Shown: positions 15,604-63,400 of the stretch, in pieces
Numbering within the stretch: position 1 is the stretch's first letter
Layout: every line of letters starts with the position of its first letter
NCBI RefSeq assembly: GCF_000143415.4
Contig: NW_003314407.1
Span: forward strand, 1 to 64,000
DNA length: 64,000 nucleotides
DNA from: Selaginella moellendorffii
Taxonomy: Eukaryota > Plantae > Lycopodiophyta
Reading direction: 5' to 3'
Notes under the pieces: model-generated
The model's database searches: none
Seen by the model: only the letters and a program-made list of their open reading frames with translations
Told to the model about the DNA's origin: nothing
Program-made: the position numbers and the translations under genes

Positions 15604-15849
15604 GGACAAAGATCTCATGGTGTTGTGCTAGAACAAGCTTTAAGTGTAGATTCTAGGAATTCTACTAGCAAATAGTAGCAATTTTGTTTGAAACTAGTGT
15701 GAGTGTAGATTCTGTGTCCTCGTGATTAAAGAGGGTATTCTTTGACAGATCATCATGTATGATTAAAGAAAAAATTCTTTGCTCATTTCCAATATAGTCC
15801 AAAAGCTGGCTCCTGTACTTTACCAAGCATAAATTTAGGGTTCTTGGAG

Positions 15850-32397: not shown

Positions 32398-32816
32398 ATG
32401 CTGTCCAAGTCCGAGTGTGTGGATCTCATCACTTCTGCGACCAATTCCTCACAGGCGATCGATGCCCATTCCCGGATCGAGATCGCCCAGAAGCAAATGC
32501 TGCCTGGCGATTGCTGCTACCTCTCCAATCTCGTCATCCTTCGGTATGGCAAGCTGGGCAAGATCCAGCGCGCGCGAGCAGTGTTTGACTCCATGGAGCG
32601 ATGCGATTGCCACTTGTGGGTCATTATGTTCTTGGCACACGCCCAAGAAGGGCATCTCGCCACTACCAAGGATCGAGGCAAGGTTACTGCTGCATGGTGG
32701 ATTGCTTGGGGCGAGCTGGGTATGTGGAAGAGGCCGAGGAACTTGTGAGGAGCATGCCTTACAAGCCAGTTTCAGTGGATTGGATGTGCTTGCTGGGAGC
32801 AAAGTCTAGAAATTGA
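32398..32816 (+). pseudogene. PPR fragment (copy B)
   Basis: Near-identical to 15185-15603. Confidence 0.8.
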
Positions 32817-33065
32817 GGACAAAGATCTCATGGTGTTGTGCTAGAACAAGCTTTAAGTGTAGATTCTAGGAATTCTACTAGCAAATAGTAGCAATTTTGT
32901 TTGAAACTAGTGTGAGTGTAGATTCTGTGTCCTCGTGATTAAAGAGGGTATTCTTTGACAGATCATCATGTATGATTAAAGAGAAAATTCTTTGCTCATT
33001 TCCAATGGTCGCTTGGTAAAGTACAGGAGCCAGCTTTTGGACTATATAAATTTAGGTTCTTGGAG

Positions 33066-36424: not shown

Positions 36425-39400
36425 TATAAACAATTAAATTTTTCATTTTACTTTAGTCACTTCACTACACGTTCGACCACATGGAGGAGTCTAACTCACA
36501 ATCTCCATAAGTCCTATTTCGGGCTTAAGGACTTGCTAGCCCTGAGAATGACATTTATGCCACTCAATCTTTACACTTAGTTTAAGTGCTCCACCTGTTT
36601 AATCCTATAACCAACACCCAAAGGGACCATCGATATATCAACACTGACATAGGATGTCTGGAGACATAGGGGACACCCTACCCCAATATCCTTTTTACTG
36701 TCCCCACCAAGTCCCTTTTATCCATGGTCGTACTCGTCAACACCACTACTGGGTCAAGGCCCAAAGGCTTGACCATTAAGTCCTATTATCCTCTAAGACT
36801 TCTTCACCATGTGACTGTATCCTTGGTCACTACACCAAAGGATTACTTTTCTTCCTTTCCACAGTTTGAGACTTTGGGATGACATTTTGAAACACTGTGG
36901 CCTTATGCGAGCCTTATGGGTACTCTCCCCACCTTCTGCATTTTGGTGCTCTAGCTATGGGTTTAGAGTGAGGTTCCATTAAGCCATGGTAGGTATCCAA
37001 GTAGGTAGTGCCACCCATGCTTGGACTGGGAGCATCGACCATTCAATCTCCCGGGGGAGCTAAAGCTAGCTCTTGAACATTTCATTAAACTACCCCACTT
37101 GTTGCGAATATGACTTCGGGTATCGAAAGTTACCTATCGGCTAGTCCTTTCAGATATTCTTTCCTTACTGCCACGATGGCAAGAGGTCAGTATTGCTGGA
37201 CCCATTATCAGTTTCCCACTTGAGCTAGTTGAGAAATTGGTCAATGACCATGCACTTAGATTGGATAAACATAAGGTAGGAATCCTATGTGTTTCTTGCT
37301 GAGCATACTCGGCTTGGTTTGAGAAACTTGTGTCATTGGCTTGCACTTGCTAGTATCAAGAACCCCCGCGATATTGAGATTGGTCCCTCAATATTCGCTA
37401 GATGATAGCTTACCGTGTCTGCCAAACACCCTCGCTATCATCTAGAGGTAGAGTTAACATGTCAACATGGAAACCCATATAAGTCTAACAACACGATCCT
37501 CCACAACATCATCTGGTAAAGCAAGCCTATCATTGCTAAATCTTCATTGAGTGAAGCAAGTGTCAACAGTTCTTGACAAAGTTTACAAGCAATCATTAGT
37601 CGCAAAGCAACCAACAATCACTCTTCAACTTGTCTTCACCAGACCTAACACTAAACTCATATCATCGAGTCATATACTCATCCATCATGAACGTAATACC
37701 CTAGTATAAGATAAAGGTTCATGGATAAGCATGAACTAAATGACCACTCAAATCCAACTCAACCACAATAAGCTCACTAATGCGTCTAGCCAATAGCTCT
37801 GAGCATGCCTTGAAGAGGTTAGCTATGCATGATCAACACTTAGTCGAAGCTAAAGTGAAGACCATGAGATGAACTCATATTGGTACACAACCTCCTCATA
37901 AACAAAGTTATAGTACGGGTACCAACATCTCAACTGCAAACAACTAAGTTGGATATCACCATCCTCAACCAAGGCGCAGGGCCACCAAAACCAAGTCAAG
38001 ATCAATGAGAGCTCACTACTCTCATAGAGTTTAACGAAATGCAAGGTGCAACTTGCTACCAAACATAATACTACAAAAGAAAGGCAGAAGGGTCACCCTT
38101 CTTAGAAAAGTGCAATGGTCACTTTTCTACACTAACTCCAGACTCTATCCAACTCAATTGCTTTAGCCTCAAAAGTCAGTATCCCTTTCGGGCCGCATTA
38201 TACAAACTATCTACTAAGATCTAAGCTAACCGAAGTCAACTCTAACCCTTTCACTAGTTTGTACTGGCTTATGAAAACGGAATGATTTTTGGACAAAGTG
38301 ATCAACAGATCAGCCATTGGAAAAGTCTAAGAAAATTTATGGAAAATTTTCCATCCTAGAGAAAGAATGACTCTCAATCCAAAAGTGAAAACTTCAAGAC
38401 TCAACCAACTTCCTCCTACTAACAAATTCATATAGGTTCACCTCAACACAAATTCTCATGACCCACAATATGTCTAAGCATCGAATATTTTTTTGCCCAT
38501 ACTTCCGACATCTAACACCAACATCTGCAAAGTGCAAAAGGAACATCCAAGGCTTGATCACGAAGACTACAACTTTGGACATCCATATTGCACTAACACT
38601 CTTTTTCAACCACCTTCAAGATCCAATGTGAAGCCCAAACACTAACAAGAAAAATGACATAGAAAATCAAGCTCTAAGAAAAATTCCTCATCAATCGAAT
38701 TAACAATGCCACTTCCACTAACATAAGTGCTAGCGATATCAATGCCTCAAACTTCACATCTTCTCAATCCAACAATCTACTCTAAATGTTAATGGATTCA
38801 TCAACAAGCTATAGCAAGCTATAGTGAATGCTACAACCCTTTTCCAACACTTTATGGGCAAACCCTCAAGGAAACAAGGTACCAACTTAAGCTTAGCATA
38901 ATGGACCACCATCGAGAATCCAATCAAAGCTACTACAATGCTACTACGTGCAAGTAGACTAGCTCCACTATCAACCACTTTGGGGTTGATCATTGTTTAA
39001 CCAAACAACTTCGTAAACACATTGCTCACTATCACATGGATATGATATAATAATCACAATGACTTGATCATCAATTGAGCAACACCACGAGCAATGCCCA
39101 TGTCATTATTTCAAAGGTTTATATGAGTATCAAATGTCAACTCGATTCAATAAAATGCAACATAAATGCCACACTCCACCGATAGAGATTTACAACACCC
39201 AACACCACTAACTTTTGTTCACAACACAGACAAGTTCATACCACTCTCTACTGACCAAACTCAATACTAATCCAACACCAAGCTACTTAAGGAGCAATAA
39301 CAAGGTTCCCTGGAAAAGAATTGAGCATTGCAACCCAAGTCTTCCAATAGCAAGCCTAGACAAAAAATGTATTGCACTTCACCGCTATCCATCCCACAAC

Positions 39401-41905
39401 TCACCATTGTAAGACCACCATCTCCAACATGCATCAAGATAGGGATTCTTGATTGCATGATGTGAACTAACACCTCGTTGTAGATCATTTCTCTAAGGAG
39501 AGAAAATGATTTACGTGTTTGATCCTTCGTCCCTGACAACTCTCTTTCTGGTCTCATCTTTGGCTAAACCACAAGCTTGCATTTGCATTGCCTTCAGTCC
39601 AATCCAAGAAAAGTTTATGAGAGAGCATGGCAATGACTACTTGAACCAATAGACTCATCCCTACAGTCTTAGTTGATCCACTTGTAATCATGCCTAGGAA
39701 GGATCCACTAGTGCCGTGCTAAACAGCTACGGACCAGCCTATTTGCTACTTATAGCAAACCCAAGGAAGGTTTACTTTCACCTATGGTACATGGAACAAC
39801 TCACAGAACCATTAGAACAACTCATGGAACCACCGATAGATTAACATTAATCCTACCAACTCGGAGTGTAACCTTGAGTTGCTAATGTGCCTCACTTACG
39901 AGCCCAAGCACAAATTTGTGCTAAATGGAACAACTCAATCCCATCCTATGAGCCCAAGAGCAAGCTCACATCATAAAGTACAACGAGGTAACCAAATCCA
40001 TACCTAAGGAACAATTGTGAAGCCTTTGCACCCAAATGTGTACCCACTTGGATCATCGTTTTCATCTCTGTGTATGCAATGAGACAAGTTGCCCAATCTC
40101 GTTGGATAGTACTTACCGAGACTTATTCCCTGATACCAAATGTAGTACACGTGGTTTTGACCCTTTATCCTATGGTGTTTTACCATAGGATAACACTGCG
40201 AAGCGAAACCTAAACCCTATTTATGCCATGTGACACATGCCACATGTCATATGCCACGTGTCCAAGGAACGTGGTGCCAAACCCGAGATTCAGGGCCTTG
40301 GGCCACTGAACGAAGGAATGGTGCCAAAACCCCCAAGCATGAAGCCAAGGAGTGATGGAATCGAACCACGGAGCAACTCTCGAGCATACAGCCCAAGGAG
40401 CGAAGGGATAGGAGCCTGGAGCGACTTGGAACAATTCTGGAGCAATCAGCATCTCAATGCTAGGACCAGTATGCAAAACAAAGCCAAACGGAGTCTAGCG
40501 CTATTTCGGCATACCGGTGGCTTAATGCAAGGACATGAGTACTCCCCCAGTTAATATGGAATGGAACTTGGGCTTAGACCCAAGCCGGACGCAGAACAAG
40601 GACAAGCACGCAAGCGAGAGCTAGACTATGCCTTAAGTTGGTCGGCCATGCCCGACCTACCCACTATCCCTACTATACATTTAGAACCCCCCACAACCCC
40701 CCTTCCCCCCCCCCCCCCCCTGAGGAACACACGCTTTGGGCTTTCACCCCAAGCCTCCCTTAGTATTAGGAGTTAGTCTCTAGGACAAGGCTTGAACACA
40801 ATGGTGTTCGTCCCATGTCCAAATTCACAATCTAGGGACATTCTATATTTAGTAAGTTTCGATCTCTACATTCCGTAGATATACCAAATGAACAAATCTG
40901 GACACTTTCCATAAATAGCATTTGGGACCAAAATGAGACTAATACAAAGGGCATGATAGTGAGGGTGTTTGGCAGACACGGTAAGCTATCATATAGCGAA
41001 TATTGAGGGATCAATCTCAATATCACAGGGGTTTTTGATACTAGCAAGTGCAAGCCAATGACACAAGTTTATCAAACCAGGCTAAGTATGCTCAGCAAGA
41101 AACACATAAAGTTCCTACCTTATGTTTATCCAATCTAAGTGCATGGTCATTGACCAGTTTCTCAATTAGCTCGAAGTCACATTTGCGACATCACTTGTCT
41201 ATCTGTATTTAATTTAGCCTTGGATTCTTCAATAGTTATATCATCATCTAACACGTGGGTATAGCCTTTCTTGGTCACACTAGCCTTTCTTGGCCAAACT
41301 GGCTCTACTAGAGTCTTCCCTCTACTATACTTTTGGAGCTCACCTAGGGTTTGGGAGACAAACACTTTGGGCTTTCACCCTCGAACTCGGACTTCGACTT
41401 GGACTCAGACTCAAACTTAGACTCAGATTGGGACTTAGACTCGGACTTGAAATTGGTCTCGGTCTTAGACTCGGGCTTGGTCTCAGTCTCAGACTTAGAC
41501 TCGGTCTCGATTTCGGTCTCCCCCTCATGTCTATCTCAAACTCCATCTCAAGTCCATCTCGAACTCCATCTCAGGTCTATCATTGACTCGAACTCGGACT
41601 CAGACTCGGACTCGGACTCAAACTCGGACTCGGTCTTAGTCTCGGTCCTGGTCTCCCCCTAAGGTCCATCTCAAACTCCATGTGTCATGTGTTTAAAGTG
41701 GAGCCAAAAGGGTGCCATATGGTAGTGGCCGAAGTAGAACCCCAAACGAGTATAACATGTTTGGATTAAAAGCTCTAACTTAGATAGTCAAGAGTGGGAG
41801 TGGAACTCCTAACAAAGTGCTCAAAAAACAAGCACGAAGCAAGCAGTAAATGAGTCTTTAGAAAAGGGACACAAGAGGACCAGGCTGAGGGATTTGTGTC
41901 TCACA
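36425..41905 (-). mobile_element. Diverged solo LTR of large family, interrupted by 37100-41190
   Basis: Reverse-complement LTR sequence continues across the insert (TACCCCACT|..|TCACTTGTC) and ends GTCTCACA at 41905. Confidence 0.8.
37100..41190 (-). mobile_element. Second-family decayed Gypsy-like LTR element with inverted ends
   Basis: Minus-strand LTR 41190-40141, PBS TGGTATCA ~40138-40131, decayed pol; 37100-37441 is an inverted copy of 40953-41190; TSD CCACT/TCACT. Confidence 0.8.
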
Positions 41906-44383: not shown

Positions 44384-44656
44384 TGTAAGCTTTTAAGATT
44401 GAGTTTAGACTTCTTGAGAAGTCACCCAAACTGGAATTGCTAAATGTCAATCAACATATGGTGCGATTCCCCTAGCCAACCAATAGAGTCAAACTTGAGA
44501 CCCTCTCTAATACCAAATGTAAACTTATAAGTTTGGACTTCCCGAAATGTCACCCAACCCAATACTATTTAAACCCAAGGACACTTAACCCCAAATATTT
44601 CAATACCCTTAACTTACTTTTATTCATAAGCCTTTTTCCTTTATATTTAAATCCCA
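44384..44656 (-). mobile_element. Decayed Cassandra TRIM fragments
   Basis: Reverse complement of the Cassandra LTR/5S region, PBS and internal start. Confidence 0.75.
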
Positions 44657-45245
44657 TATAAGCAACCAAAAGGAACAATTTGAAAGATAATCTATAGGGT
44701 TCAAATATAGAAGAAAAATGCCTATGAATAATAGTACACCCCCTTTTCCAATCGGTTAAAGGTCTTGAGATATTTTGGGTTAAGTGTCCTTCGGTTTAAA
44801 TAATACTATGTTAGATGACCTTTCAGGAAGTCTAAATTTAGAAGCTTACATTTGGTATTAAAGAGGGTCTCCAATCTGACTTTATTGGTTGGATAAAGGA
44901 ATTGCACCATATATTGATTGACATCTGGCAGATCCACTTTGCTTCGGCTAAGCTCGACCCTAGGGGTAGGGTGTCAAGAGAACGGGGCTCTTAGAAGAGT
45001 TGTGGCTCTCAACTTTTGTTCATGAGGGTGTGAACTTGCAAGAAAGCATAATGGATTATAAGCAACCAAAGGGAACAACTTGAGAGATGATCCATAGGGT
45101 TTAAATATAAACAAAAAGGGCCTATGAATAAGAGTGCACTCTTTTTTTCAATCGATTAAAGGTTTTGGGATATTTAGGGTTAAGTGTCCTTAGATTTGAA
45201 TAATACTGAGTTGGGTGACCTCCTGGGAAATCTAAATTCAAATTG
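44657..45245 (+). mobile_element. Decayed Cassandra TRIM (LTR 44657-44850, internal, LTR from 45057)
   Basis: Colinear with 59834-60426, with many C>T/G>A changes. Confidence 0.85.
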
Positions 45246-46999
45246 TTGTCCTCAAGTTGTTCTCTTTAATTCTTTACAATTTTTTGTCACTACATTAATT
45301 GTGAATGTTTTCCCCTATCCTTCACATTGGCTTGTAAGAAAAGCTCTAGTCCTTCACTATAGTGTCAAGAGTGACATTGGAATGCCTTCTAGATGGACCA
45401 TTACCTAGCAAATAAGTGCTGGATTAGCTGCTTGCAGCAAATGCCTAGATAAGGCAATTGTTGTGGACTATGGAGCTTGGCTCACCCAAGTGCTAGAGCA
45501 ATATAGTGCTTAATATTTGTGTATCCACTATCTCTTGCATACTCTACTGAAATCTCTTAACAAGTTGAGGAAGGGCTAGTACATACCCACACTAGTAACA
45601 ACTGAGAAAGAAGCACTTTAGCTAGCAAGTGCCCTCTCAATGCCTAAATGATGTGCAAAAGCCATAGAATATTTCCTTATGGGCATAGGAAGATGGTGGA
45701 GGAATGACATTATAGCTTGGACTTGGCCTACCACTCAATCTAGTGTGTAACATTTGCCCCATCACAATCTTGCCATTGGGAAATCATGAAGATTTTGGTC
45801 CAATAGTAGGGGATAAGGATGGCTAAACCCAGGAAAAGAGGGGGCACTTGGCAGTGGTGACACAGCTATTGGCACTAAAGAAGTGGCACAAATGAGAAAT
45901 GAGATTGGGCCTATTCCAAGGTAGCATGAAGTTATAGGGCTTTTTGTGTATTAATTGCAAACTTGTTCAAGAAATCTAGTGGTAGAAATCTTGCCAAAGA
46001 CACTAATTTTTTGTATTTTTTTCTTTAATTAAAAGTGTAGAGATTTAAGCATATTCAAAGCTTAAAGATAACTCTATTTATTAAGCTTGATTTTTCACTT
46101 ATAAAAAGACCAACTCTCACTACACAAGTAATAGAGTGTTAACCATTTCTTCACAAACTCCCAATTCTTTTTTTGAGTTAAACTAAACTTAAAGTTTGGC
46201 TAACCAACTAATCCTTAAAGTTTTTAAGGTATAACAAAACTTGTTCTAAATCCTAAATCTTGGGGTGTATATAATAGTTCAAGACCTCAAAGGGAAACAC
46301 TATAGTTTAAATATTCGATATAAGTACCCTAACTCCCCACTTCCATCCCAAAGGGAAGGCTTAAGCTTTTAGGAAGGGGCAAGGACCAATGAACCTTATA
46401 GGACTCAAGTGGGGCACCATTTTATTTAAGATGAAAGTATTGTAGTCAGTTTCTCTTCCAAGAGTGGGTATTGCTCTTCTCTGACACCCCTTAAATATAT
46501 GCTCACTCACCTAAAGCTATTAACCCCTAGCCCTAACCTTAACATAATTTAAAAGCACCTCTAAAGAGTTCCTTCAAGAGTGGGTCTTTATCTTCATTCT
46601 CCTTCTTATACTTTTGGAACCCTTTGCAATTACTAGACACTTATTCATGCCACAATCACTAAAAAAGGTTTGAATCTTGAGCCAATCCACCAAGAAAGTC
46701 TTATTTGGAGTGAGCTTTGAGTGCCTTAACATACCCACATGGTAACTGTCATAATATGCATCTCTTTTTGCATTTCTTGCTAATTTGATTGAGGGTTTGC
46801 AGCTTATGAACAACATTATAGATAGTCAAAACCTTTATGACTCTATTGGCAATATTATCGGCACCACCATCGATAATAAGATTCTAATGTTCCTCTTGGT
46901 CAACCATCACAATTAACTTCTCTAATACTAATATTACAATCTGGTGATAAAAGATAAAAAAAGTATAGCAACTATGCTACACCTTTTCTTGAAATTCCC

Positions 47000-49900
47000 C
47001 TAACCAAGTTCCTATACTTTAATATATGGTCAAAGATGGTGCTTAATAGGCCACAACTTTGGCAAACAAAAGGGCATTAGGGGTAGCTTGAGCTCTCACA
47101 TGTGGTGTAATGACAATGGAATAAAATGGAGTCAAGATTTTATACTTGACATAAGGCCTCAATAAATGGCCCTAACCACTCACTTGATTGCATCACTATC
47201 ATCTACTAGTTAGATTTGGAAGGTACTTTTGTCTCAAAAGAGCAGCACTCTGCCCCTTAGATATAAATTAGCAATATACAAAACTGTTTGGTGTCTATGG
47301 TTTCCTTGTTAGTCACATCAGTACTTTAGAGGAATTTATATGTATAAACGTTTCAAAGTTCTTTTTTGTAACTACAGGTATGTTTTGGCATTTTCAATAC
47401 TTTGCAAATATACTTGCTACCATTAGTGTGGCTGATATGCTGCTATGGGTTTGACAAACATTCTTATATGCAATCTCTAGTGTGGTAGCTAGTAGCAGTG
47501 CATTTGCAGGCAAGAGGGCTAGGATTTCCATGGATCAGTTGTCTTGCCACTGCCGCCACAGTTGCCCTATCAAGGAATCTCTCCAGCTCATGATGAGGGA
47601 GGAGGGATTGGAGCTCTACGAGGACATGATCCTTGGGCAGATGTATTACAAGAGTAAGATGTTTATATTCATCTAATAATGAACAGGAGGCCATGTCCAC
47701 AACCGCCGATGGCACAAAATCCTTGTCTAGACAATCCACAGATGCTGGAACAACATGCTTGTCAGAATCATGAGAAGAGAGTGAAGAAGGAAGAAGATCT
47801 TGAGAAAGGGTATTAACATCAGCCATAGAACTTCCCGGGGGATGAATAACACTAAAATCATATATCTGAAGTGTAACCAACCAAAGGGAACGATTCGAGA
47901 GACGATCCATAGGGGTTCAAATATAGAGGGAAAGGGCCCATGAACAAGAGTGCACCCCCTTTTCCAATCGGTTAAGGGTCTTGGGATACTTGGGGTTAAG
48001 CGTCCTTGGGTTTGAATAGTACTGGGCTGGGTGACCTCCTGGGAAGTCCAAACTCAGGAGCTTACAATTTGGTATTGGAGCTGTTCCTTAGTCCGACTTT
48101 TATTGGTGCTCAAGTATATCACCATTGATGTTGGCATCGGAAGGTCCTAGGAGTGGGCCTATCCTGGAGGAGTAGCATGTCGAGAGGACATGGCTCTCCA
48201 CTCAAGTTCATGCGTGAACTTGGGCACAATGTGGTGGATAGAAAAGGGCCAATAATGGAACGACTTTGGGATCTTGGGAACAGTATAAGGTCTCCTCAGA
48301 GAGCTGAGGATGTTATCCAAATGAGCGTTGGAAACGGGCTAACGTAGTTGTGATAAACAACTATAGTTGGGATCACGGGAAAGATGTAGACTCCAAAACA
48401 ATAAAGAAGTCACAAGATTATCCTCATATACTTGAGGTTGGTGCTCATGAATGTGAGACCAGAGGTAATGACCGTGGGAGGTCAAATACGGAAGAGGACT
48501 CAAGTCCTTGAAATGGTAGCCGGGGCTACCTTTAATAAATGCTGGAACAACCCAAGGAGTTGGGGGGTGTACTTAGAGATGAGTTGGTATTCTCATCACA
48601 TGGACAAGTAGTCCTAAGGGGCAAAGGTTGCCCCCAGGGAACAAAATCAAGTGTCAGAGTAACACTTGTGAAAATAGTCCTTTTAAGTAGGACAAGAATG
48701 CAGGAAGTGTATTCCAGTGAGCTAGTGCCTCACAAGTAGGACCTTATAGGTCTGTGGATTAACCAAGTCCAAAACTGCTGGATGACTCAAGTAGAGTCAA
48801 GGGATGGTCCTAAAAGGACTGATGGAAGCATTTGGACTGCGGTGTGTTGTACCCCACGAAGGATGGGGGGGGGATCATAGGATCCAAGGATGAGAACAGA
48901 GGGTATCTCATCGATGGCAAAATGTGCCATGCTAAAGTCGTGGGAAAGGTGTTCCCAAAAAGAAAACAACTTTGACACAAAGTTGTGTGTGACCTCTATG
49001 GTGCAGTGCTAACGGATGGTTGGCATGAGAAAGAGTGGTATTGGTCTTGGCAAAGACTTAGACACAAAGAAGAAATGTCATAGAGGTAGGCTCGTGGAGC
49101 TGATGGTGTGGAGACACCAAATGTGCCAAGGTGTGATACCTTAAGGCTATGTTGGTGGGTTCATGAGAACCCCTTGCCAATAGAAATGGGAATGGCATAG
49201 CCTAAGCTGCAGAGCATGCAATTGGAGTGTGGTGACCCAAATAATGATGGAGGTGTGGAAGCACCAGCAATGAGTTGTAGGACTTAACAACTACGAGGCA
49301 ACTAAGCAAGAGGTGCAAAATAATTGGTTAAATGGGTAGAAAGTAGCTACCCAAGCCTTCTTAATGGCATAGGGAAGTGGATATACTCTTACGGGGGATA
49401 AGTTGCTTATGTTGCGATATAGTAAGTCAATGTCATAAAAGGAAATACTCATTGTCAAGGAAGCCGTCATTTGGACACCCGAACACTTTAGAACACCAGG
49501 AGGTGGTGTTTGATGTCGCGAGGGCAGTAGATAAGGCCCAAGGGACTAAGTCCCTAGCGAATGATGGATAGAAGGTGCTATCCAAATGTCCAAGGTGGCG
49601 GAGACAGGAGAAGACTATCTACTCGAATTGGACAAAGCCAAAAATGGAATTTTGGCAAGGCTAGCGATGGGCATGCAAAGGCCCGTAAGCAACAACGTAA
49701 TCCCGTTGTGTGGGATTATAGGGTGAGCATACCTGGATTGAGGAACCACTCCCTAGGCTATCGGGTAGGTTCATCCCTAAGAATACTTGCTAAGGCATGA
49801 TAGAAAGTGCAAAGCTATCTTCCTGGTCTGGAGGAAAATGACCGAAGGAAAGGTGTGAAGCCAAAAGCAAGGAAGTAAGGGGATAGAACCGAACCATAGG

Positions 49901-52900
49901 AACCGAAGGGCATAACCAATGTTGGTTATGCTAGCTGGGAGTGGAGAATCAAGTGGGGGCTCGAGGGTGTTGCTGCTAGCAACCGTGATGCCATGGAGAG
50001 TCTAAAATATGGAATTGTCCATGTTAGACTGTATGGTAATTGAAAAGCTTGCAAAAAGAGAGGCCTTAGCAAGCTAAGGGATAGAGTTCCTTCAAGGTTC
50101 CCAAAGAAGATTCTAGGTAGCTTAGTACCTAGAAAGGCCAAGCATAAATGGTTCAAGGAACGCGCGAAATTAGAGTGGCGCAGCAGAAGTGTGGTCTTGA
50201 AGCTTGCCATGAGGCAAGGCTATCAAGGTTAGGGAAGTAGTTCTCGAGTGTTCAAAGAGAGGGCTTTGAACGAAAGTCGATGATCAAGGGCTTTCACGCT
50301 TGTGCAGGAACCATGTTACAGTGGTCGGAGGACTTGCCAAAGCGAGATTGGCAAATCAAGGGAACAAATACCCTAGTTGAAGGTGATAACTTCAAAAAGG
50401 GTGGGCCATGGGGCCAAGCATGGAGGAGTCCATGCATGATCACAAGCTTGTCAAGTGAGAGGACTTGGCAGTGGGGAGGAATTAGGTTCCTAAGCTGTGA
50501 TCAATAGCACGCTTTGAGTATAAGTTGGTGCACCGGCGTGGGGAGTCACGCCAGGCATCCTGGGTGATGCCGTCCGTAGATGCATATACGGAGGTTGGGT
50601 TCGAGTCCCAACCCTCTAGTGCTTGGGTTCGAGTCCCAAACCACTAGGGCGTGGTGATGATTTGGAATATGAGGACACTCATATTTTGGTGGTCATGGAC
50701 TCTCAGTGTGGAGACTGGTTTGGGCACACCGCCAAGCGAGGGATGCCTCGGAGTCGTGATGCACGGTTAGATTGCTTAGTGTGAAAGCTCGGCATATCTA
50801 ACTTGAACGCTTTGGTGCAAGTGGCACCAAGGACGTGGTGAGTGAGATGGGGACACCTAATCTCAGTTGCTATGAACCCTTGGCCGTAAGGGCTGGCTTG
50901 GGTGCACCGCCAAGTGTGGGGGATGCCCCCGGGGTTATAGTCAACAATTTGAAGGTCTAGAAGACCAAGTACCTCTTGGCAACTCTGTTAAGGTGCCAAG
51001 GTGAGATCACTAGGTGATCGTATGGCCAAATAAGAACAAGGTCCTTGGTTGGCTAAGGAATGAAGTTCTTGGTTCAAAAATGTTGAAATTGAACTGTTTA
51101 AGGTGGTGTGGCTTGGTCATGATGACCAAGTGGGAAGAGCACCTAAGTGAAATAAACTATGTTCGTGCGATGGCATAGTGAGTCCAAGGAAAGTAGTCTC
51201 TATAAGAGACCCATGGGAGGGTCACGAAGTTGGGCCGTGGATAGAGCCCATAGCAGGAGATGCTAAAGAGACGTACTAGGGGCGAACATCCTCCGGACTT
51301 GGCAAAGAAGAGTCTTTGCTATGGAACCGAAAGGATACCTCAAAAATGGAGGTAGCGATCCTATGTTGCTGGGTGTAACAATCAAGGATAGGAGCAAAGG
51401 ACTAGTGGCCAAATTTGGGCCATGGAATTTAATGGAAGGGATCCAAATGGCAAAGTTAGCCAAGGAACACTAATGTGTTTGATGCTAACGGGATGTGGGA
51501 AAGGAAGTGGACTTCCAAGGATGGATTCCTAAGTGCTCCAATTTGGCGAAGTAAAAGCTCATGGTGAGGGAGCGGCAAAGTAGCCAAAAAGATAGGGCCA
51601 TGGACAACCCTAGCACACAATATAATAACTGGAACTCAGTGCCCAAAGGTGGCATGAAATCGAACAGAGGATGATGGTGCCCTCAAGTGGAGAACTTCCT
51701 AGGATGAGGAAGTGGAGTTGCACAATATGTACAATGCAAGGTGTCGGAGACACCTAGGAAATTGATTTCGAGAAGTCAGAATTAAAAGTTCCAAAGTGCA
51801 AGGATTATAGCGCTGGAAAGTGAGACCACTTGAGAACGTGTAGTGGGATCGCGTTAGAGAAGGTGTCTCTAACAGGTTTAATGAGAACTAAACCAATAAA
51901 AGGAGAGAACCACCACAAGTGGTCAAATGAGCCTCTAAGTTGGAGAGGCTATGCTCCTTAGAGGATGGACAAGGCATGGTGAGCCTTTAGTGTCAAACCA
52001 TAGACCGATATTGGTTGGGTGCCAAGGATGGAAATGGTAACACATGCGGGTGTTACTTTATGAAAGGGTTTACCGTTCGATGAGGACATCGAACTTTGTC
52101 TATGGGTGGTGGAGTTGTGAGACACAAAATCCCTAGGCCCCAAAGTAGAGCCGGAGGGGTGCCACGTGGTAGTGGCTGAAGCGAAAGACAAACGAGCGTA
52201 ACACGTTTGGACTAAAAGCTCCGCCTTGAAAGGTCGAGAGCGGGAGTGGAACCCCTAACAAAGTGCTTGAGGAATGAGCACAAAGCGAGCCATAAGTGAG
52301 GCTCCAAAAAGGGACCCAAAAAGGACTAACACATGACACGTGGAAGTGTCCGAGATGGACCCGAGTTGGAGTCCGAAGTGGAGTCCGAGAAGGACCCCGA
52401 GATGGAGTCCGAGGTGGAGTCCGAGGTGGACCCGAGATGGATCCAAGATTGAGTCCGAGACGGACCCGAGATGGAGTCCGAGATGGACCTGAAATGGAGT
52501 CCGAGATGGACCCGAGATGGACCCGAGATGGAGTCCGAGATGGACCCGAGATAGACCCGAGATGGAGTCCGAGATGGACCCGAGATGGAGTCTGAGATGG
52601 AGTCCAAGATGGACTCGAGATGGAGTCTGAGATGGAGTCCGAGATGGACCCGAGATGGAGTCCGAAGTCGAGACCGAGACCGGGACCAAGACCGGGACCG
52701 AGACTGAGACCGAGATTGGGACCGAGACCAAGACCGAGGCCGAGGCCGAGACCGAGCCCGAGTCCGAGTCCGAGTCCGAGTCTGAGTCCGAGTCCGAGTC
52801 CGAGTCCGAGTCCGAGTCCGAGTCCGAGTCCGAGTCCGAGTCCGAGTCCGAGTCCGAGTCTGAGAGGGTGAAAGCCCAAAGCGTTCGTCTCCGAGACCCT

Positions 52901-55900
52901 GGGGGGTTTGGTGAGCTCCAAAAGTATAGTAGGGGGAGGACTGCAGTGGAGCCAGTTTGGCCAGGAAAGGCCAGTTTGGCCCAGGAAGGCCGGACCCAGT
53001 GTTGGGTGATGAGCTGCCCACTGGGAAGTCCAAGACTAGAGTGAACACGGACCGACAAACGGGGTAGCTTGGTGAAGTGTTCAAGAGCCGGCTCTAGTTC
53101 CCCCGGGAGATCGACTGGCCGATGCTCCCAGTCCAAGTGTGGGTGGCACTACCTACTTGGATACCTGTCGTGGCTCAATGGAACCTCGCTCTAAGCCCAT
53201 GGCTAGAGCACCTAAAAGCGAAAGGCGGGGAGAGTACCCAGGTGGCTCGCGTAAGGCCATGGTGTTTCGAAATGTTGTCCCAAAGGCCCAGACTGTGGAA
53301 AGGAAGAGGAGCAATCCTCTGGGGTAGTGACCAAGGACACAGTCGTGTGGTGAGGAAGTCCCAGAGGACCATGGGACTTAGTGGTCGAGCCTGTGGGCCT
53401 CGATCCAGTGGCAGTGTCGGCAAACACGGCCAGGGGCAGAAAGGGACTTAGTGGGGACTGACAGAGGGATATTGGGGAAGGGTATTCCCCTTGTCGGTGG
53501 GCATCCTAAGGATGCTAAAGAGTGGATCTGAGATGACCACTCACGGATGGGTTACCTAGTCTTGGAGAGCCAAGACTGGGATGCAAGTGGTATTGGACTA
53601 CCAGTGTGGCAAAGGTGATTGGGCATGGCCTTAGCGTAACAGGCTGCTATGTCGGTGGTACCTTTGAGTGTCGGTCGTGGGATCGGACACGTGGAGCACT
53701 TGGACCAAGTGCAAATGTTGAGTGGCATGGATGCCATTCTCGGGGCTAGCAAGTCCCAAGTCCTGAATTGGACTTATGGAGGTTGTGATTGAGACTCCTC
53801 CAAGTGGTCGGAGGTGTGGTTAAGTGACTAAAGTAGAATGGAAAATTTAGTCGCTTACAATTTGGTATCAGAGCCCAGTACTATTCAAACCCAAGGACGC
53901 TTAACCCCAAATATCCCAAGACTCTTAACCGATTGGAAAAAGGGGTGCACTCTTGTTCATGGGCCCTTTCCCTCTATATTTGAACCCCATGGATCGTCTT
54001 TCAAGTCGTTCCCTTTGGTTCCTTACATGAAGCTTCAAGGCCCACTAAACAGTGCGACCAACCAGGTTCTTCCTCTTTAATAATGAAGTAACGGCAGCAT
54101 GATCACCTTTTAGTAATGTTTTGAGAACCATGTAAATATGCATGAAGTTTTTAAAAACCCTAGATTGCTACTAAACACTCTTTCTTTATCGTGGAGTAGT
54201 TCACCTCCGTTGGTTGTAATGTATAGCTTATATATGCAATAGAATGGCACTAACCTGGGCTCTCTTGCATCAACACTCCTCAAAGACCAATATGAGAAGC
54301 ATTCACACGCAAAATGAAAGGTCAAGTGTGGTCAAGATATGCCAAAATTGGAGGAGTCATTAATAGCTTTTTGAGATCCAAAAATTCCTATTCATAATTC
54401 GGAGACCAGATGAAAGATGATATTGATGACTTCAGCAATGTTTGCAACAGTGTAGTGCAATAAAAAATATGATTCACAAAATGACCGAGATATTGCACCT
54501 TACCTAGGAAGCGCTGCACATCATTCACACACTTTAGAGTAGAGAACTTTAAAATACCCACAAGTTTGTCAGGATCAACTTGCAAATCCTCACGAGAAAT
54601 ACGGTACCCAAGATAAGTCATGTTCTTGAACCTAAATATGCACTTCAACTGCTTCAAGTAGAGGGACAAAAAAGTACGGAAGTGAGAGGAATCTATGAAA
54701 TATAAGGAAGTATGAGACAAGGGGGAGAAGCCTCAAAGTCACATTTCGTATAATTGCACTGCAACCAATCCATACTAAGGATGAAGTCAAAAGCTTGACT
54801 CGGCACCACCTGCAATGACTGCAACCCAAGCTCAAGATTGCCTACATGCACAATTAAGTCCACCTCATCCCATGCACATGCATGTGTATGGCCATTGCCA
54901 TAAAGAATGAAAATTGGCTCTGTTGCAAAATGTAAGTGTAAACAGCCACGTATGGTAATAAGTTGAGCAATAGAAGATAAATCAAGGGCCATCTAAGTCA
55001 GTGATGCAATTTGGTGTTTGTTTCCAAAGCCTTTTGCTTTGTGTGGAACTAGATATATCAAAGAGGATCAAGCTAGGAATGTTGTAGCCAGCACTTTGTC
55101 AAGATCTTGTTAGACTTGTGCATGTACTTACTCTAGCTACTCTTGACAATGCTCTTTGTTTGGCACAATGTTATGACATGTCGCCTCTCGCTGCACGTCC
55201 TTCAGCTCCACTTTTTATGGGTGATGGTTTTATTCTAATGGAGATTGATGCTAGTGCTACTCAAGTCCAAGGACAAAGGCGAGGACGTGGTCATGGCGTG
55301 ATGTTCACTGCTGGGCATATGATGAAGTTGGTCACACTTATCGGCATTGTCAATGTTTTCCAGATTGGCAGCCTCCATTTCCTGGGTGGAGACCTTGGCG
55401 TCAATAATGTCCTATTGGTGCTATTGCAGTGAAAGGTTTGGACACCGAGATGCATTCGGGAAACAAGGAGTCACACAAGTAATTGAGGGACCTTGCGCGA
55501 ATAAGCCAGTGACCCTTCCATTTTTCTTTCGAGAGTATCATAAAAGGGTTCACTCAGCACCAGTTCATCTAATATTTACTTTTTAAGCTTGTTTTTATAA
55601 CAAGAAGTCTTCTATTATTCTCTCCATATTGGTTGATATAAATTCGAGTGGAGATGATGCAATTGTTGGAAGGCGTCATCACAATTGTCAACATATCCGA
55701 ATGTGCGTTTGAAAACGTCTAGGAGAACACTCCAATTCCCACGAATGGTTGCACTTAAACCATTGTACCATTGCAGTGCCATCCCTTGGAGACATACAAG
55801 AAACTCACGCTAATGTCGAGCATCATCCCAAGAATGATATGTGGTAATCACCGTGAAGTGATCAAACCAATGGTATACATCATTCCTAGGATTCCCACGA

Positions 55901-56291: not shown

Positions 56292-57129
56292 ATGTAAGTG
56301 CATGGAATATAGAAAGGGAATACAAAAAATGTGAATATCAATTAACCCAAAAACCTTAGCTTATATACAAGAGTGAATGGTCTGGATTGAAACTAATCCG
56401 ATGCCTACTAAAATCCCACTATGCTAATATTAGTATATGGCATCATAGCCTACACACACACGATATATAGGCAAATGCTTTGCTTCTATAGTCTAGAAAA
56501 ATTCTCAAATTGATTGTGGACAGAACAAACTATGAAGTTTTATTTACTCTTTTTCACACTGAGCTTTGGCTCCAAATACTTGCACATTGCTGTGTTCTTA
56601 ACCCATCCAAACATTCTGCATGCATACATCTTTTGATCCTCTTCTAGTTTCCTCATGTCTGCAATAGAATCTAGAGACACATTGACTAGGTCTTTCACTT
56701 GTCCAAACCTGGAGTACAAAAGATAACATCAAGTGATTGAAAATGAAACAGCACAAATGTACCTTGAATGGCCACAATGTGTAAAATACTGTTCCCATGA
56801 CTTGAATACCGGGTGTGATCTATCCCCATCATAGCCTTTTGTCCATCCCTGAAGACCTTAGCATTTTGGATGAGTGCCGTGGAGAGACTTTGCCATGGAA
56901 TGATTAATACTAAAGATCGCAGTTGGACAGAACATAGATGGAATAGTGCCTAAGGAAACTGTTTGAAGGCAGCTAAGAAAAGCTCTTTGCAATGCATTGA
57001 CTCACTAGAATGAACAAACCAAGCTAGGGGATCCTGGAAGTGCTACCTTGGAAGGATGCCATCGAGAATTTCCCTAATCCCTCCCTTCTCTCTAATCTCA
57101 TGAGAGGCTAGCTTTGTCGAGCGAAACTG

Positions 57130-57548
57130 ATGCTGTCCAAGTCCGAGTGTGTGGATCTCATCACTTCCGCAACCAATTCCTTGCAGGCAATCGATGCCCA
57201 TTCCCAGATTGAGATCACCCAAAAGCAAATGCTGCCTGGCAATTGCTGCTACCTCTCCAATCTCGTTATCATTTGGTATGGCAAGCTGGGCAAGATCCAG
57301 CACGCGCGAGCAGTGTTTGACTCCATGGAGCAATGCGATTGCCACTTGTGGGTCATTATGTTCTTGGCACACGCCCAAGAAGGGCATTTCGCCACTACCA
57401 AGGATCGAGGCAAGGTTACTGCTGCATGGTGGATTGCTTGGGGCGAGCTGGGTGTGTGGAAGAGGCCGAGGAACTTGTGAGGAGCATGCCTTATAAGCCA
57501 GTTTTAGTGGATTGGATGTGCTTGCTGGGAGCAAAGTCTAGAAATTGA
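57130..57548 (+). pseudogene. PPR fragment (copy C)
   Basis: Diverged copy of 15185-15603. Confidence 0.8.
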
Positions 57549-57805
57549 GGACAAAGATCTCATGGTGTTGTGCTAGAACAAGCTTTAAGTGTAGATTCTA
57601 GGAATTCTACTAGCAAATAGTAGCAATTTTGTTTGAAACTAGCGTGGGTGTAGATTCTGTGTCCTCGTGATTAAAGAGGGTATTCTTTGACAGATTATCA
57701 TGTATGATTAAAGAGAAAATTCTTTGCTCATTTCCAATGGTCTCTTGGTAGCCAGCTTTTGGACTATATAAATTTAGGGTTCTTGGAGGTCAGTGGCACC
57801 CATCC

Positions 57806-58565
57806 ATGGAGGAAGAGGTGCGAGCGGGAGGAGCGGTGGATTCTCTCAGTGATGGCACAGGGCTGCGCGGCAATCTCCAGTGCAGGCGGCCATGGCAGGA
57901 GCTCAGCAGCTCGCTGGGCGACCTGGGCACATTCATCCTGATCGTCATGGCTCTAGCTCTCATCAATGGCATGGATCTTGGTACATCTCTCATCGCCACA
58001 GGCATCTACAACATTCTCACTAGTGTGCTCTTTGGCGTGCCAATGCCTGTCCAGCCCACAAAATCCATCACAGTGGTGGCCTTCACCAAATCCAAGCATC
58101 TCTGTGTGGATGAGATCATGGCCGCGGGGATCACTGTGTCTGCGATCGTGTTTGTGCTTGGAGTCACGGGCTTGATCACAGGTCGTGGCTTGGATCGTGC
58201 CATTGCCAGTGGTTTGTGGCATCCAGCTTGTGCATGGGCTCCCTTTCGCGGTCAAGGCTGTCAAGTACGTGATGAAGGATCAAAATCTCTCTAGGGACAA
58301 GGCAATGGGTGATCGACCACAGCTGGGCTTGGATGGAATTCTCCTCACAGTGATTTGCTTTGCATTCATCATGCTGGTGAATGTATCCAGTGAGGGCTAC
58401 GAGTACTTCATGACGAACAGTGAAGGTGATCGTCATCACGATGATCATGAAGAGCACCGTGAAGAACATCAAGCAAGATTGTCAAAGCTTGTGAAGTTTT
58501 TCCAGAGGATCCTGACTGCCTTGGCAGTGTTCGTGCTCAGGATCATCCTGGCGTTCATGAGGAGG
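57806..58565 (+). pseudogene. MOT1-like pseudogene copy C (retains ATG and N-terminus, truncated by LINE)
   Basis: MEEEVRAGG...GDLGTFIL...PMPVQP, then a frameshift; sequence switches to LINE at ~58566. Confidence 0.85.
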
Positions 58566-59833: not shown

Positions 59834-60481
59834 TGTAAGCAACCAAAGGGAACGACTCGAGAAACGATCAATGGGGTTCAAATATAGAGGGAAAGGGCCC
59901 ATGAACAAGAGTGCACCCCCTTTTCCAATCGGTTAAGGGTCTTGGGATAGTTGGGGTTAAGCGTCCTTGGGTTTGAATAGTACTGGGTTGGGTGACCTCC
60001 CGGGAAGTCCAAACTCAGGAGCTTACATTTGGTATCAGAGAGGTCTCGGGTCCGACTCTGTTGGTTGGCTAGGCGAATCACACCACATGTTGATTGACAT
60101 CTGGCTGGTCCAGTTTGCTCCCACTGGGCTCGACCCGAGGGGTAGGGTGTCAAGAGAGCGAGGCTCTCGGGAGAGCTGCGGCTCTCAGCTTCCGTTCACG
60201 AGGGCGTGAACTTGCAGGGAAGCGTGGTGGATTGTAAGCAACCAAAGAGAACGACTTGAGAGACGATCCATGGGGTTCAAATATAGAGGGAAAGGGCCCA
60301 TGAACAAGAGTGCACCCCCTTTTCCAATCGGTTAAGGGTCTTGGGATAGTTGGGGTTAAGCGTCCTTGGGTTTGAATAGTACTGGGTTGGGTGACCTCCC
60401 GGGAAGTCCAAACTCAGGAGCTTACATTTGGTATCAGAGAGGTCTCGGGTCCGACTCTGTTGGTTGGCTAGGGGAATCACA
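59834..60481 (+). mobile_element. Cassandra TRIM, LTR-int-LTR plus start of a second internal unit (tandem)
   Basis: 194-bp LTRs 59834-60027 and 60233-60426; PBS TGGTATCAGAG after both; 205-bp non-coding interior; 5S-like segment in each LTR. Confidence 0.92.
59956..60010 (+). promoter_or_regulatory. 5S rRNA-derived Pol III internal promoter (A box to C box) in Cassandra LTR
   Basis: GTTAAGCGTCCTTGGG..AGTACTGGGTTGGGTGACCTCCCGGGAAGTCC compared with plant 5S GTTAAGCGTGCTTGGG..AGTACTAGGATGGGTGACCTCCTGGGAAGTCC (recalled, not aligned). Confidence 0.85.
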
Positions 60482-63400
60482 AGTAGGACCTTATGGGTCT
60501 GTGGATTAACCAAGTCCAAAACTGTTGGATGACTCAAGTAGAGTCAACGGATGGTCCTAAAAGGACTAATGGAAGCATTTGGACTGTGGTGTGTTGTACC
60601 CCACAAAGGATGGGGGGGGATCATAGGATCCAAGGATAAGAACAGAGGGTATCTCAAAGAACAGAGGGTATCTCATCGATGGCAAAATGTGCCATGCTAA
60701 AGTTATGGGAAAGGTGTTCCCAGAAAAAAACAACTTTGACATAAAGTTGTGTGTGACCTCTATGGTGTAGTGCTAACGGATGGTTGGCATGAGAAAGAGC
60801 GGTGTTGGTCTTGGCAAAGACTTAGACACGAAGGGGAAATGTCATAGAGGTAGGCTCGTGGAGCCGATGGTGTGGAGACACCAAATGTGCCAAGGTGTGA
60901 TACCTTGAGGCTATGTTGGTGGGTTCATGAGAACCCCTTGCCAAAGGAATCCCAATGGAAATGGGAATAGCATAGCCTAAGCTGCAGAGCATGCAGTTGG
61001 AGTGTGGTGACCCAGATAATGATGGAGGTGTGAAAGCACCAAGCAATGAGTTGTAGGACTTGACAACTATGAAGCAACTAAGCAAAAGGTGCAAAATAAC
61101 TGGTTAAACGGGTAGAAGGTAGCTACCCAAGACTTCTTAATAGCATAGGGAAGTTGGATATACCCTTACGGGGGATAAGTTGCTTGTGTTGCGATATAGT
61201 AAGTCAATGTCATAAAAGGAAATACTCATTGTCAAAAAAGCCATCATTGGGACACCCGAACACTCTAGAACACCAGAAGATGGTGTTTGATGTCGCGAGG
61301 GCAATGGATAAAGCCCAAGGGACTAAGTCCCTAGCGAATGATGGATAGAAGGTGCTATCCAAATGTCCAAGGTTACGGAGACAGGAGTCCGAGGTGGACC
61401 CAAGATGGACCCGAAATGGAGTCCGAGATGGAGTCCGAGGTGGACCCGAGATGGACCCGAAATGGAGTCCGAGATGGAGTCCGAGATGGACCCGAGATGG
61501 AGTCCGAGATGGAGTCCGAGGTGGACCCGAGATGGACCCGAAATGGAGTCCGAGATGGAGTCCGAGATGGAGTCCGAGATGGACCCGAGATGGACCCGAG
61601 ATGGAGTCCGAGATGGAGTCCGAGATGGAGTCCGAGATGGAGTCCGAAGTCGAGACCGAGACCGGGACCGAGACCGAGACCGAGACCGAGATCGGGACCG
61701 AGACCGAGCTCGAGCCCGAGTCCGAGTCCGAATCCGAGTCCGAGTCCGAGTCCGAGTCCGAGTCCGAGTCCGAGTCCGGAGCCTGAGAGGGTGAAAGCCC
61801 AAAGCGTTCGTCTCCCAGACCCTGGGGGGTTTGGTGAGCTCCAAAAGTATAGTAGGGGGAGGACTGCAGTGGAGCCAGTTTGGCCAGGAAAGGCCAGTTT
61901 GGCCCAGGAAGGCCGGACCCAGTGTTGGGTGATGAGCTGCCCACTGGGAAGTCCAAGACTAGAGTGAACACAGACCGACAAGCAGGGTAGCTTGGTGAAG
62001 TGTTCAAGAGCCGGCTCTAGTTCCCCCGGGAGATCGACTGGCCGATGCTCCCAGTCCAAGTGTGGGTGGCACTACCTACTTGGATACCTGGTGTGGCTCA
62101 ACGGAACCCGCTCTAAGCCCATGGCTAGAGCACCCAAGGGTAGAAGGCGAGGAGAGTACCCAGGTGGCTCGCGTAAGGCCACGGTGTTCCGAAATGTTGT
62201 CCCAAAGGCCCAGACTGTGGAAAGGAAGAGGAGCAGTCCTCTGGGGTAGTGACCAAGGACACAGTCGTGTTGTGAGGAAGTCCCAGAGGACCGTGGGACT
62301 TAGTGGTCGGGCCTGTGGGTCTCGATCCAGTGGCAGTGTTGGCAAACACGGCCAGGGGCAGAAAGGGACTTAGTGGGGACTGACAGAGGGATATTGGGGA
62401 AGGCTATTCCCCTTGTCGGTGGGCATCCTAAGGATGCTAAGGAGTGGATCTGAGATGACCACTCACGGATGGTTTGCCTAGTCTTGGAGAGCCAAGACGG
62501 TGATGCAAGTGGTATTGGACTACCAGTGTGGCAAAGGTGATTGGGCATGGCCTTAGCGTAACGGGCTGCTATGTCGGTGGTACCTTTGAGTGTCGGTCAT
62601 GGGATCGGACACGTGGTGCACTTGGACCAAGTGCAAATGTTGAGTGGCATGGATGCCATTCTCGGGGCTAGCAAGTCCCAAGTCCTGGATTGGACTTATG
62701 GAGGTTGTGAATGAGACTCCTCCAACTGGTCAGAGGTGTGGTTAAGTGACTAAAGTAGAATGGAAAATTTAGTCGCTTACAATTTGGTATCGGAGCTGTT
62801 CCTTAGTCCGACTTTTATTGGTGCTCAAGTATATCACCACTAGTGTTGGCATCGGAAGGTCCAAGGAGTGGGCCTATCCTTGAGGAGTAGCAAGTCGGGA
62901 AGACATAGCTCTCCATTACAGTTCATGTGTGAACTTGTAGACGAGGTGGTGGATAGAAAAGGGCCAATAATGGAACGACTTTGGGATCTTGGGAACAGTA
63001 TATGGTTTTCCTCAAAGAGTTGAGGATGTGATCCAGATGAGCGTTTGACTTAGCAAACTGGCTAATGTAGTTGTGGTAAACAACTACAGTTGGGATCACG
63101 GGAAAGATAAAGACTCCAAAGCAATAAAGGAGTCACAAGATTTTCCTCATATAGTTGAGGTTGGTGCTCATGAATGTGAGACCAGAAGTAATGACCGTGG
63201 GAGGTCAAATACGGAAGAGGACTCAAGTCCTTGAAAAGGTAGCCAGGGCTACCTCTAATAAATGCTGGAACAACCCAAGGAGTTGGGGGTGTATTAAGTG
63301 GATGAGTTGGTGTTCTCATCACATGGACAAGTAGTCCTAAGGGGCAAAGGTTGCCCCCAAAGAACAAAATCAGGTGTCGGAGTAACACTTGTGAAAATAG

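Follow-up and report, generated by a model that had tools for sequence, protein, structure and literature searches.

A chimera of a Cassandra retrotransposon and a large gene-less long terminal repeat element in Selaginella moellendorffii, flanked by one target-site duplication and bounded by two outward-facing Cassandra U3 ends

The DNA considered here is the first 64,000 nucleotides of contig NW_003314407.1 of the spikemoss Selaginella moellendorffii (assembly GCF_000143415.4, forward strand), and this whole stretch is what we call the window. It is packed with long terminal repeat (LTR) retroelements. One of the insertions, at positions 47872-54027, is built from two families: Cassandra, a miniature terminal-repeat retrotransposon (TRIM), and a large family similar to the large retrotransposon derivatives (LARDs), which we call L. 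The unit lies in a decayed element of the Ty3/gypsy type. Its parts are listed below, with the primer binding sites (PBS), the polypurine tract (PPT), the two copies of the target-site duplication (TSD) and the adjoining host sequence.

47464-47871, minus strand: host pol frame downstream of the insertion site (LQIYDFSVIHPPG...), from translations
47867-47871: left TSD copy, TGAAG, identical to 54028-54032
47872-54027: the chimeric unit, a TSD-flanked insert of 6156 bp
47872-48066, plus strand: complete Cassandra-type LTR of 195 bp, TGTAAC...GCTTACA, recognised by its 5S-derived segment, box A/C and LTR identity
48067-48081, plus strand: spacer ATT and PBS TGGTATTGGAGC, both of the large-family type by comparison with L and Cassandra copies
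48082-52115, plus strand: interior of family L (LARD-like, non-coding), 90.9% identical to and collinear with 6421-10374, ending in a hairpin and PPT
52104-52115, plus strand: PPT of L, GGGTGGTGGAGT, directly before the L LTR
52116-53859, plus strand: L LTR of 1744 bp, TGTGAG...GCTTACA, following the PPT
53860-53875, plus strand: spacer ATT (L-type) and PBS TGGTATCAGAGCC, a 13/13 match to the complement of initiator tRNA-Met (tRNA-iMet), from a PBS scan
53872-53875: overlap AGCC at the inversion joint, which fits both a PBS/tRNA copy and the inverted Cassandra LTR
53876-54027, minus strand: Cassandra LTR in inverted orientation, covering positions ~153 to 1, with the U3 start outward (...CCTTACA against the TSD)
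54028-54032: right TSD copy, TGAAG, directly outside the unit
54033-54732, minus strand: host, decayed Ty3/gypsy pol with the C-terminus of reverse transcriptase (RT) and RNase H, upstream of the insertion site, from an RT_RNaseH match and translations

The same five bases stand at both ends of the unit, as a sequence-only reading of this DNA had claimed. When the unit and one copy of TGAAG (47872-54032) are deleted in silico, a continuous minus-strand frame results, ...NLVGRTV-stop-WALK/LQIYDFSVIHPPG..., in which the slash marks the joint; the restoration of a Gypsy RNase H frame that had been proposed is thus indeed seen. Within the stop-free segment 54163-54249 (minus strand), about 43 codons upstream of this joint and in the same host element, the Pfam family RT_RNaseH (PF17917) is matched with 26.6 bits against a cut-off of 24.8. 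The frame has decayed by stops and shifts, and the RT-RNase H domain in this interrupted pol frame identifies the host as a Ty3/gypsy element. Since the frame is restored and the RNase H match lies so close upstream, the insertion site is near the C-terminal end of the RNase H domain in a decayed Ty3/gypsy pol, and the unit, or at minimum its two termini, was inserted as one piece. A 5-mer repeated on both sides, together with a conserved pol motif that is restored exactly across the gap, is not what chance would give. The most economical reading is one integration event, as had been suggested, and the TGAAG copies and the restored host frame supply the flanking TSD that characterises a template-switch complex in the sense of Sabot & Schulman 2007. 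Against the Cassandra consensus TGTAAGC, adjacent transversions are present at 47877-47878 in the left arm (TGTAACC) and at 54021-54022 in the right arm (TGTAAGG).

The left arm is a full Cassandra LTR. Rfam 5S_rRNA matches it at 47976-48063 with 38.6 bits (gathering score 38), and the two pol III boxes, A and C, of a published query for Cassandra (PMC7215508) are present, each with one mismatch, at a spacing of exactly 18 nt. Its identity with the LTRs at 59835-60027 and 60234-60426 is 95.9%; in these the 5S segment (at 59937 and 60336) is matched with 32.8 bits. These two LTRs belong to an intact copy, 59834-60426, which has the complete architecture of a TRIM: 593 bp in length, LTRs of 194 bp with a Kimura two-parameter distance (K2P) of 0.021, the PBS TGGTATCAGAGA and a PPT ...GTGGTGGAT. 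The unit itself does not have this architecture, as it consists of one full LTR and one inverted partial LTR and contains no Cassandra interior. As in known Cassandra elements, box A, an 18-nt spacer and box C derived from 5S are followed by a tRNA-iMet PBS a few nucleotides past the 5S part, an arrangement like that of ferns, and multi-LTR arrays are also found in the window (59834-60478).

At the spacer the sequence changes to L. A complete element of 8.1 kb at 4470-12564, flanked by the TSD GTATG and with LTRs at a K2P of 0.0068, has an interior with which positions 48060-52004 are collinear (90.9% identity). The family has LTRs, a PBS, a PPT and a TSD around a long interior (about 4 kb, 91% conserved between copies) without gag or pol, which is the definition of a LARD. 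No ORF (open reading frame) above 185 aa is present in the interior, and in neither the unit nor the reference copy was a Pfam family found in any ORF tested. Because of this, L should be seen as another passenger and not as the helper. The L LTR of the unit differs from other L LTRs by a K2P of 0.036-0.046 (last 1000 nt). Its U3 part includes, at about 52350-52870, a variable block of 11-12-nt repeats (GAGATGGAGTCC/GAGATGGACCC) and (GAGTCC)n, with comparable blocks at 4700-5400, 10800-11550 and 61380-61830, and it is the variation of this block that makes the LTRs of different L copies differ in length. Our read material consisted of three runs of one source-organism sample and one run under another label, as short Logan contigs. 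Over 47970-53969 these give more than 100,000 fragments of 60-250 nt with very high summed depth, which shows that family L is extremely abundant in the source organism.

The two families had been called unrelated, and this part of the sequence-only reading has to be given up. The L leader (the first ~160 nt, 48082-48240) is a diverged copy of the entire internal domain of Cassandra, to which it aligns from end to end, including a GTTCA...TGAAC hairpin and the PPT-like motif GTGGTGGAT. In a global collinear alignment of the whole domain, made for three L copies, the homology reaches z 9.0-10.6, and none of 500 shuffles attains the score; a strict local alignment of the leader after the PBS is not significant (124 of 1000 shuffles). 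The 3' ends of the LTRs agree in 13 of the last 17 nt and continue into a common PBS (81% over 32 nt), and the ending GC(T/G)TACA noticed earlier for both families is confirmed. At the other end of the interior, L and Cassandra have in common a hairpin just before the PPT (reached by 10 of 1000 shuffles), the PPT core, and the LTR start TGTRAG which follows it. With U5 end, PBS, leader, hairpin and PPT core shared in this way, cross-use of one machinery by L and Cassandra is plausible on sequence grounds. L contains two hairpin-plus-GTGGTGGA modules, one in the leader derived from Cassandra (48215-48245) and one at the true PPT (52075-52115); the former might act as an internal plus-strand priming site.

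Where exactly the two families meet on the left can be read from the spacer. In the window, every Cassandra copy has the sequence ...TACA-TT-TGGTAT(C/T)A(G/A)AGAG, that is, TT followed by TGGTATCAGAGA, and all L copies read ...TACA-ATT-TGGTATCGGAG, that is, ATT followed by TGGTATCGGAGC, the exception being one decayed copy with a substituted spacer. The unit is Cassandra through GCTTACA and of the L type from ATT on. Since both the spacer and the left PBS are of the L type, and Cassandra copies have TT and CAGAG, the crossover does not fall in the PBS but inside GCTTACA, the closing 7 nt shared by the two LTRs. The earlier description of a full Cassandra LTR joined to the interior of an 8-kb family therefore stands as regards the complete 195-bp LTR and the chimera of two families, but not as regards the PBS as the place of the joint. 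The same can be said about the mechanism proposed for it, a jump of Cassandra strong-stop DNA via the shared PBS. The families are indeed joined where LTR end and PBS are common to both. However, a plain jump of Cassandra plus-strand strong-stop DNA onto the L minus strand predicts a Cassandra-type spacer, and this is not observed. The joint needs either a minus strand which retained a few nucleotides of U5 and spacer, with the heteroduplex resolved in its favour, or inheritance from a chimeric parent; it may thus come from a pre-existing Cassandra::L lineage and not from the event which produced the rest of the unit.

This last thought can be carried further. The whole module of Cassandra LTR, PBS, L interior, L LTR and PBS could have pre-existed in a chimeric lineage that propagated and had a Cassandra LTR at either end, so that only the right end would be new, made by one faulty plus-strand step at the second PBS. 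Such a history would remove the difficulty with the L-type spacer. We regard it as a variant of the origin that we favour below, not as an alternative to it, and in this particular form as possible but rather doubtful.

On the right the L interior ends, as had been described, in its own LTR of about 1.7 kb (1744 bp), followed by a PBS (53860-53875) and the start of a Cassandra LTR in reverse complement (53872-54027). A 3' LTR would not be followed by a spacer and a PBS; this layout is that of 5' LTRs and of plus-strand strong-stop DNA. Directly after the L LTR stands ATT with TGGTATCAGAGC (53860-53874). No other site in the window matches the tRNA-iMet complement without a mismatch, and here the match extends to the 13-mer that a preprint quotes as the conserved tRNA-Met sequence. 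At the same place four L-derived copies (three other L copies and the left PBS of the unit) have CGG or TGG. The right PBS fits, as far as its sequence goes, a copy made from the tRNA primer. A serious caveat is that a CpG transition would yield the same PBS, for which reason this tRNA footprint is downgraded as proof; the left PBS displays the corresponding CpG-to-TpG change of the L-type CGG. There is no tRNA gene in the window with which the primer could be compared.

The PBS passes into the inverted arm across a short overlap, AGCC. Positions 53872-54027 are the reverse complement of 47873-48028 at 94.2% identity, which corresponds to Cassandra LTR positions ~157 to 1, and the inverted arm is 95-96% identical to the LTRs at 59834 and 60233. 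The overlap amounts to 4 nt if the rare C variant of the left arm (GGGCT) is used and to 2 nt with the Cassandra consensus. This C occurs in the left arm alone among six Cassandra copies and is absent from the other five; it suggests, from sequence, that both arms came from one Cassandra parent. An overlap of this kind is consistent with a template switch or with end joining onto Cassandra plus-strand DNA. The arms differ by a K2P of 0.055 (8 substituted sites and gaps over ~153), which can be compared with 0.021 for the LTR pair of the intact TRIM and 0.0068 for that of the reference L. If the arms were identical at integration, the insert would be several times older than either of these two elements.

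Two simpler arrangements do not describe the locus. An ordinary minus-oriented Cassandra at this site is rejected because the left end reads as a U3 start and not as an inverted U5 end, and a complete L nested inside Cassandra is rejected because there is no 5' LTR of L, no internal TSD, and a PBS after the LTR on the 3' side.

There is also a rival account with two donors. Integrases can pair two like ends in vitro, and one may imagine that two cDNAs in one pre-integration complex each supplied a Cassandra U3 end, one donor being a chimera of Cassandra LTR and L that ended in LTR-PBS and the other a broken Cassandra cDNA, while the inner ends were joined by microhomology-mediated end joining of the host. 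The final structure would be identical. Besides, the 2-4 nt shared at 53872-53875 are typical of end joining, and the arms have no clearly shared derived change outside the overlap, so that two parents are possible. However, the broken chromosome would have to be held together until repair, the broken end would have to fall exactly at the end of the PBS, the rare C of the left arm at the overlap points to a single parent, and the left joint would still require recombination during reverse transcription. We therefore consider this account improbable.

Could the unit be an artefact of assembly, created inside the insert by a jump between repeats at the 22-nt identity of LTR end and PBS, or at the inversion joint? 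It is true that L is extremely abundant in the reads and that, among the contigs of 60-250 nt listed, none bridges the inner joints. However, the outer ends, the TSD and the host frame cannot stem from misassembly, the interior is about 9% different from the other copies in the window and mostly unique in k-mers, an overlap of 2-4 nt is far too short for an overlap assembler, and there are no Ns. In our opinion an artefact is very unlikely, and the structure is real as assembled; what makes it unusual is the inverted U3 end together with the retained LTR-PBS.

We propose that the unit goes back to one event, in which an integrase inserted a misassembled cDNA that had formed during the reverse transcription of a Cassandra TRIM and of L by the same machinery. 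Our rough estimate for this reading is a probability of about 0.5. In a first step, a strand transfer via the shared U5 end, PBS and leader would place the Cassandra LTR before the L minus strand, unless the Cassandra/L joint was inherited from an already chimeric parent. The plus strand would then pass the L LTR into the tRNA primer, switch about 13 nt further on, by microhomology, onto PPT-primed Cassandra plus-strand DNA, and copy this DNA to its 5' end, which would yield a second U3 terminus. The right part would thus retain the layout of plus-strand strong-stop DNA whose transfer was not completed. Finally, an integrase requiring only the terminal ...CA of its recognition sequence would join the two U3 ends to the target with a 5-bp duplication. 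As to the acceptor of the switch, published Cassandra RNAs start within the 5S part of the LTR (PMC10886601). The inverted copy stops exactly at position 1 of U3, which a copy of Cassandra RNA would not do, so that PPT-primed plus-strand DNA is most likely to have been the template. The earlier suggestion that a second joint created an inverted U3 end which was then used at integration is supported by these observations. Since there is no matching pair of LTRs, the insert is a dead end.

Among the points in favour of this origin is the position of the joints. Every base of the unit can be assigned to Cassandra or to L, the L part is collinear with the complete reference L without extra material, and all three joints fall at landmarks of replication: the first at the LTR end and PBS, the second where the PBS ends, and the third where the U3 terminus meets the TSD. 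This is predicted by errors of reverse transcription and not by random deletions.

The last point concerns another possible history, in which an ordinary or nested insertion at TGAAG was remodelled after integration by several illegitimate-recombination deletions between short repeats. The sequence does offer substrates for this. Each LTR ends in the heptamer GCTTACA, each Cassandra LTR starts with its inverted form, and a deletion between two copies of the heptamer could set the inverted Cassandra start exactly against the TSD. Moreover, comparable deletions exist nearby, at the TCACA joint near 60478 and at the joint of L interior and mid-LTR near 61387. However, at least three independent deletions would be needed, each of them on a replication landmark, which is unparsimonious, and also a prior nested minus-oriented Cassandra directly after the PBS. 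No stray nucleotides, internal TSD remnants, remnant of the 5' LTR of L or remnant of the Cassandra interior are present in the unit, and nesting does not yield an LTR and then a PBS on the 3' side. It is, in our judgement, an unlikely explanation.

Several points nevertheless weigh against the insertion of a misassembled cDNA as we describe it. It is based on a single locus. None of the fragments listed (60-250 nt, of a family with a huge number of copies) bridges the inner joints, at 48066 and 53874. At the left joint, the ATT spacer of the L type demands an extra assumption, and the order of the steps is not readable from the product. The right PBS can be reached from the L-type CGG by one CpG-to-CpA transition, which makes it only modest evidence for a copy of the tRNA, and its 13th base is equally explained by Cassandra sequence. 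Finally, the arms are 5.5% apart, mostly by private changes, and this fits one parent plus age as well as two parents.

TSD-flanked complex insertions of LTR retrotransposons that arose by template switching are documented (Sabot & Schulman 2007, PMC1950507). The present unit resembles them in the single integration, the 5-bp TSD, the surplus LTR and internal modules, and the abnormal strand transfer between co-packaged templates by which they are explained. Those complexes are formed within one family, in direct orientation, and have near-identical outer LTRs, whereas the unit combines two families, has inverted outer repeats of which one is truncated at ~157 nt, and carries an LTR-PBS module on its 3' side. 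Instead of three direct LTRs, two complete interiors of one family and highly similar outer LTRs, it has one interior.

Inter-family recombinants ascribed to cross-packaging have been reviewed (PMC6894440), as has LTR swapping between non-autonomous and autonomous elements (Du et al. 2010, cited there). As in such recombinants, the LTR of one family is combined with the interior of another by a crossover in shared cis-signals. In the known cases a matched pair of LTRs is regenerated and new lineages are founded, while the ends of the unit are unmatched and it cannot replicate the way LTR elements do; in addition, both of its partners are non-autonomous. For Cassandra, arrays and Cassandra-Cassandra recombination have been described (PMC7215508, PMC4079214), and Cassandra TRIMs are also treated in PMC10853983. 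These three papers name ferns and angiosperms, not lycophytes, and they describe neither a fusion with a LARD nor inverted U3 termini. We found no description in the literature of an LTR-element integrant with two U3 ends, although the coverage was incomplete and this is not proof of absence. The unit belongs to a known class of reverse-transcription recombinants, and what is new in it is the inverted U3 end and the retained LTR-PBS.

A comparison with DNA transposons is also of interest. GingerRoot, of Selaginella lepidophylla, has terminal inverted repeats (TIRs) of 100-150 bp, a TSD of 6 bp, mostly TA...TA termini and its own DDE transposase; Ginger2 likewise has a 6-bp TSD, and Ginger1 a 4-bp one (PMC6839031). 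The likeness of the unit to GingerRoot is one of architecture only: terminal inverted repeats of ~150 bp, LTR-like termini and a TSD of integrase length. Unlike GingerRoot, it has a 5-bp TSD, TG...CA termini, no ORF with a Pfam family and no sign of movement at the DNA level. If integrants with two outward U3 ends were recurrent in this spikemoss, they would be ready-made TIR DNAs which an integrase could cut and paste, a step from LTR retrotransposons toward transposons of the Ginger/GingerRoot kind, which lycophytes are known to have. We would give this idea very little credence at present, but if such integrants turned out to be common in the genome, they would have a bearing on the origin of integrase-type DNA transposons.

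The locus also bears on how Cassandra is mobilised. For the family responsible for the mobility of Cassandra there is said to be 'no indication' (PMC10886601). It had been suggested that the unit would be a physical record of the particles which carry Cassandra, but we cannot follow this, as L has no genes and no helper is named. What can be said is that replication intermediates of Cassandra and of the very abundant, recently active, gene-less L would have met closely enough to fuse. The search for the helper narrows accordingly to an autonomous element with the same U5 end, PBS, leader, hairpin and PPT, although the locus does not name it. The retained LTR-PBS with the inverted U3 end would be a rare natural snapshot of a failed plus-strand transfer, and it would mean that an integrase accepted two U3 ends in vivo.

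A few candidates for the autonomous partner within the window were considered and rejected. An intact ORF of 664 aa (25023-27017), which lies just ahead of a 3' end and LTR related to L (28157-29946), has no Pfam family and is not gag-pol-like. It has an N-terminal region resembling a coiled coil and a P-loop GAGKTS (Walker-A-like), and its nearest Atlas clusters are mostly unnamed, clusters of AAA/STAND-type ATPases being found only below the 0.9 line. The copia element at ~20-24 kb has a different LTR end. An LTR or PBS of the host Gypsy with the shared signals was not found in the window. Upstream of the Cassandra at 59834 there is a sequence ending in the PPT-like GTGGTGGG; it is homologous neither with the Cassandra interior (z 0.2) nor with the L trailer (z 1.8) and was taken as chance.

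Further combinations of these elements occur in the window. The Cassandra array from 59834, which comprises LTR-interior-LTR-PBS and a further 52 nt of interior, passes near 60478 into the L interior (equivalent of 48733), with the 5 nt TCACA as overlap. Within 59834-61390, the L interior (equivalent of 49610) also joins the middle of an LTR (equivalent of 52451) near 61387, after which a normal L LTR-PBS-interior continues to the end of the window. They are independent joints, one between Cassandra and L and one within L, of a type that deletion or template switching produces. At 44427-45305 lies an old, transition-decayed pair of Cassandra elements arranged head to head, in which an internally deleted minus-strand copy abuts a plus-strand LTR-interior-LTR whose last LTR is shortened.

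An insert at 37103-41190, inside a reversed L LTR, has outward-facing inverted ends of 225 nt (93% identity) with the termini TGTYGC...GCGACA, a TT-TGGTATCAGGG resembling a PBS some 1050 nt in from the right end, and the flanks CCACT/TCACT, which match in 4 of 5 bases. It may be a second integrant of the two-U3-end kind, or else a TIR element; the window holds no other copy from which its LTR could be defined. Elsewhere, an Rfam Hammerhead_1 (type I) match is found at 2864-2906, with 40 bits against a gathering score of 34. A segment of about 1.6 kb is present three times at ~90.7% identity (56943-58565, 14995-16572 and 32208-33777), and the copy at 57806-58294 codes for a fragment with a match to the molybdate transporter family MFS_MOT1 (E 1e-16), which may be a gene fragment carried by a repeat.

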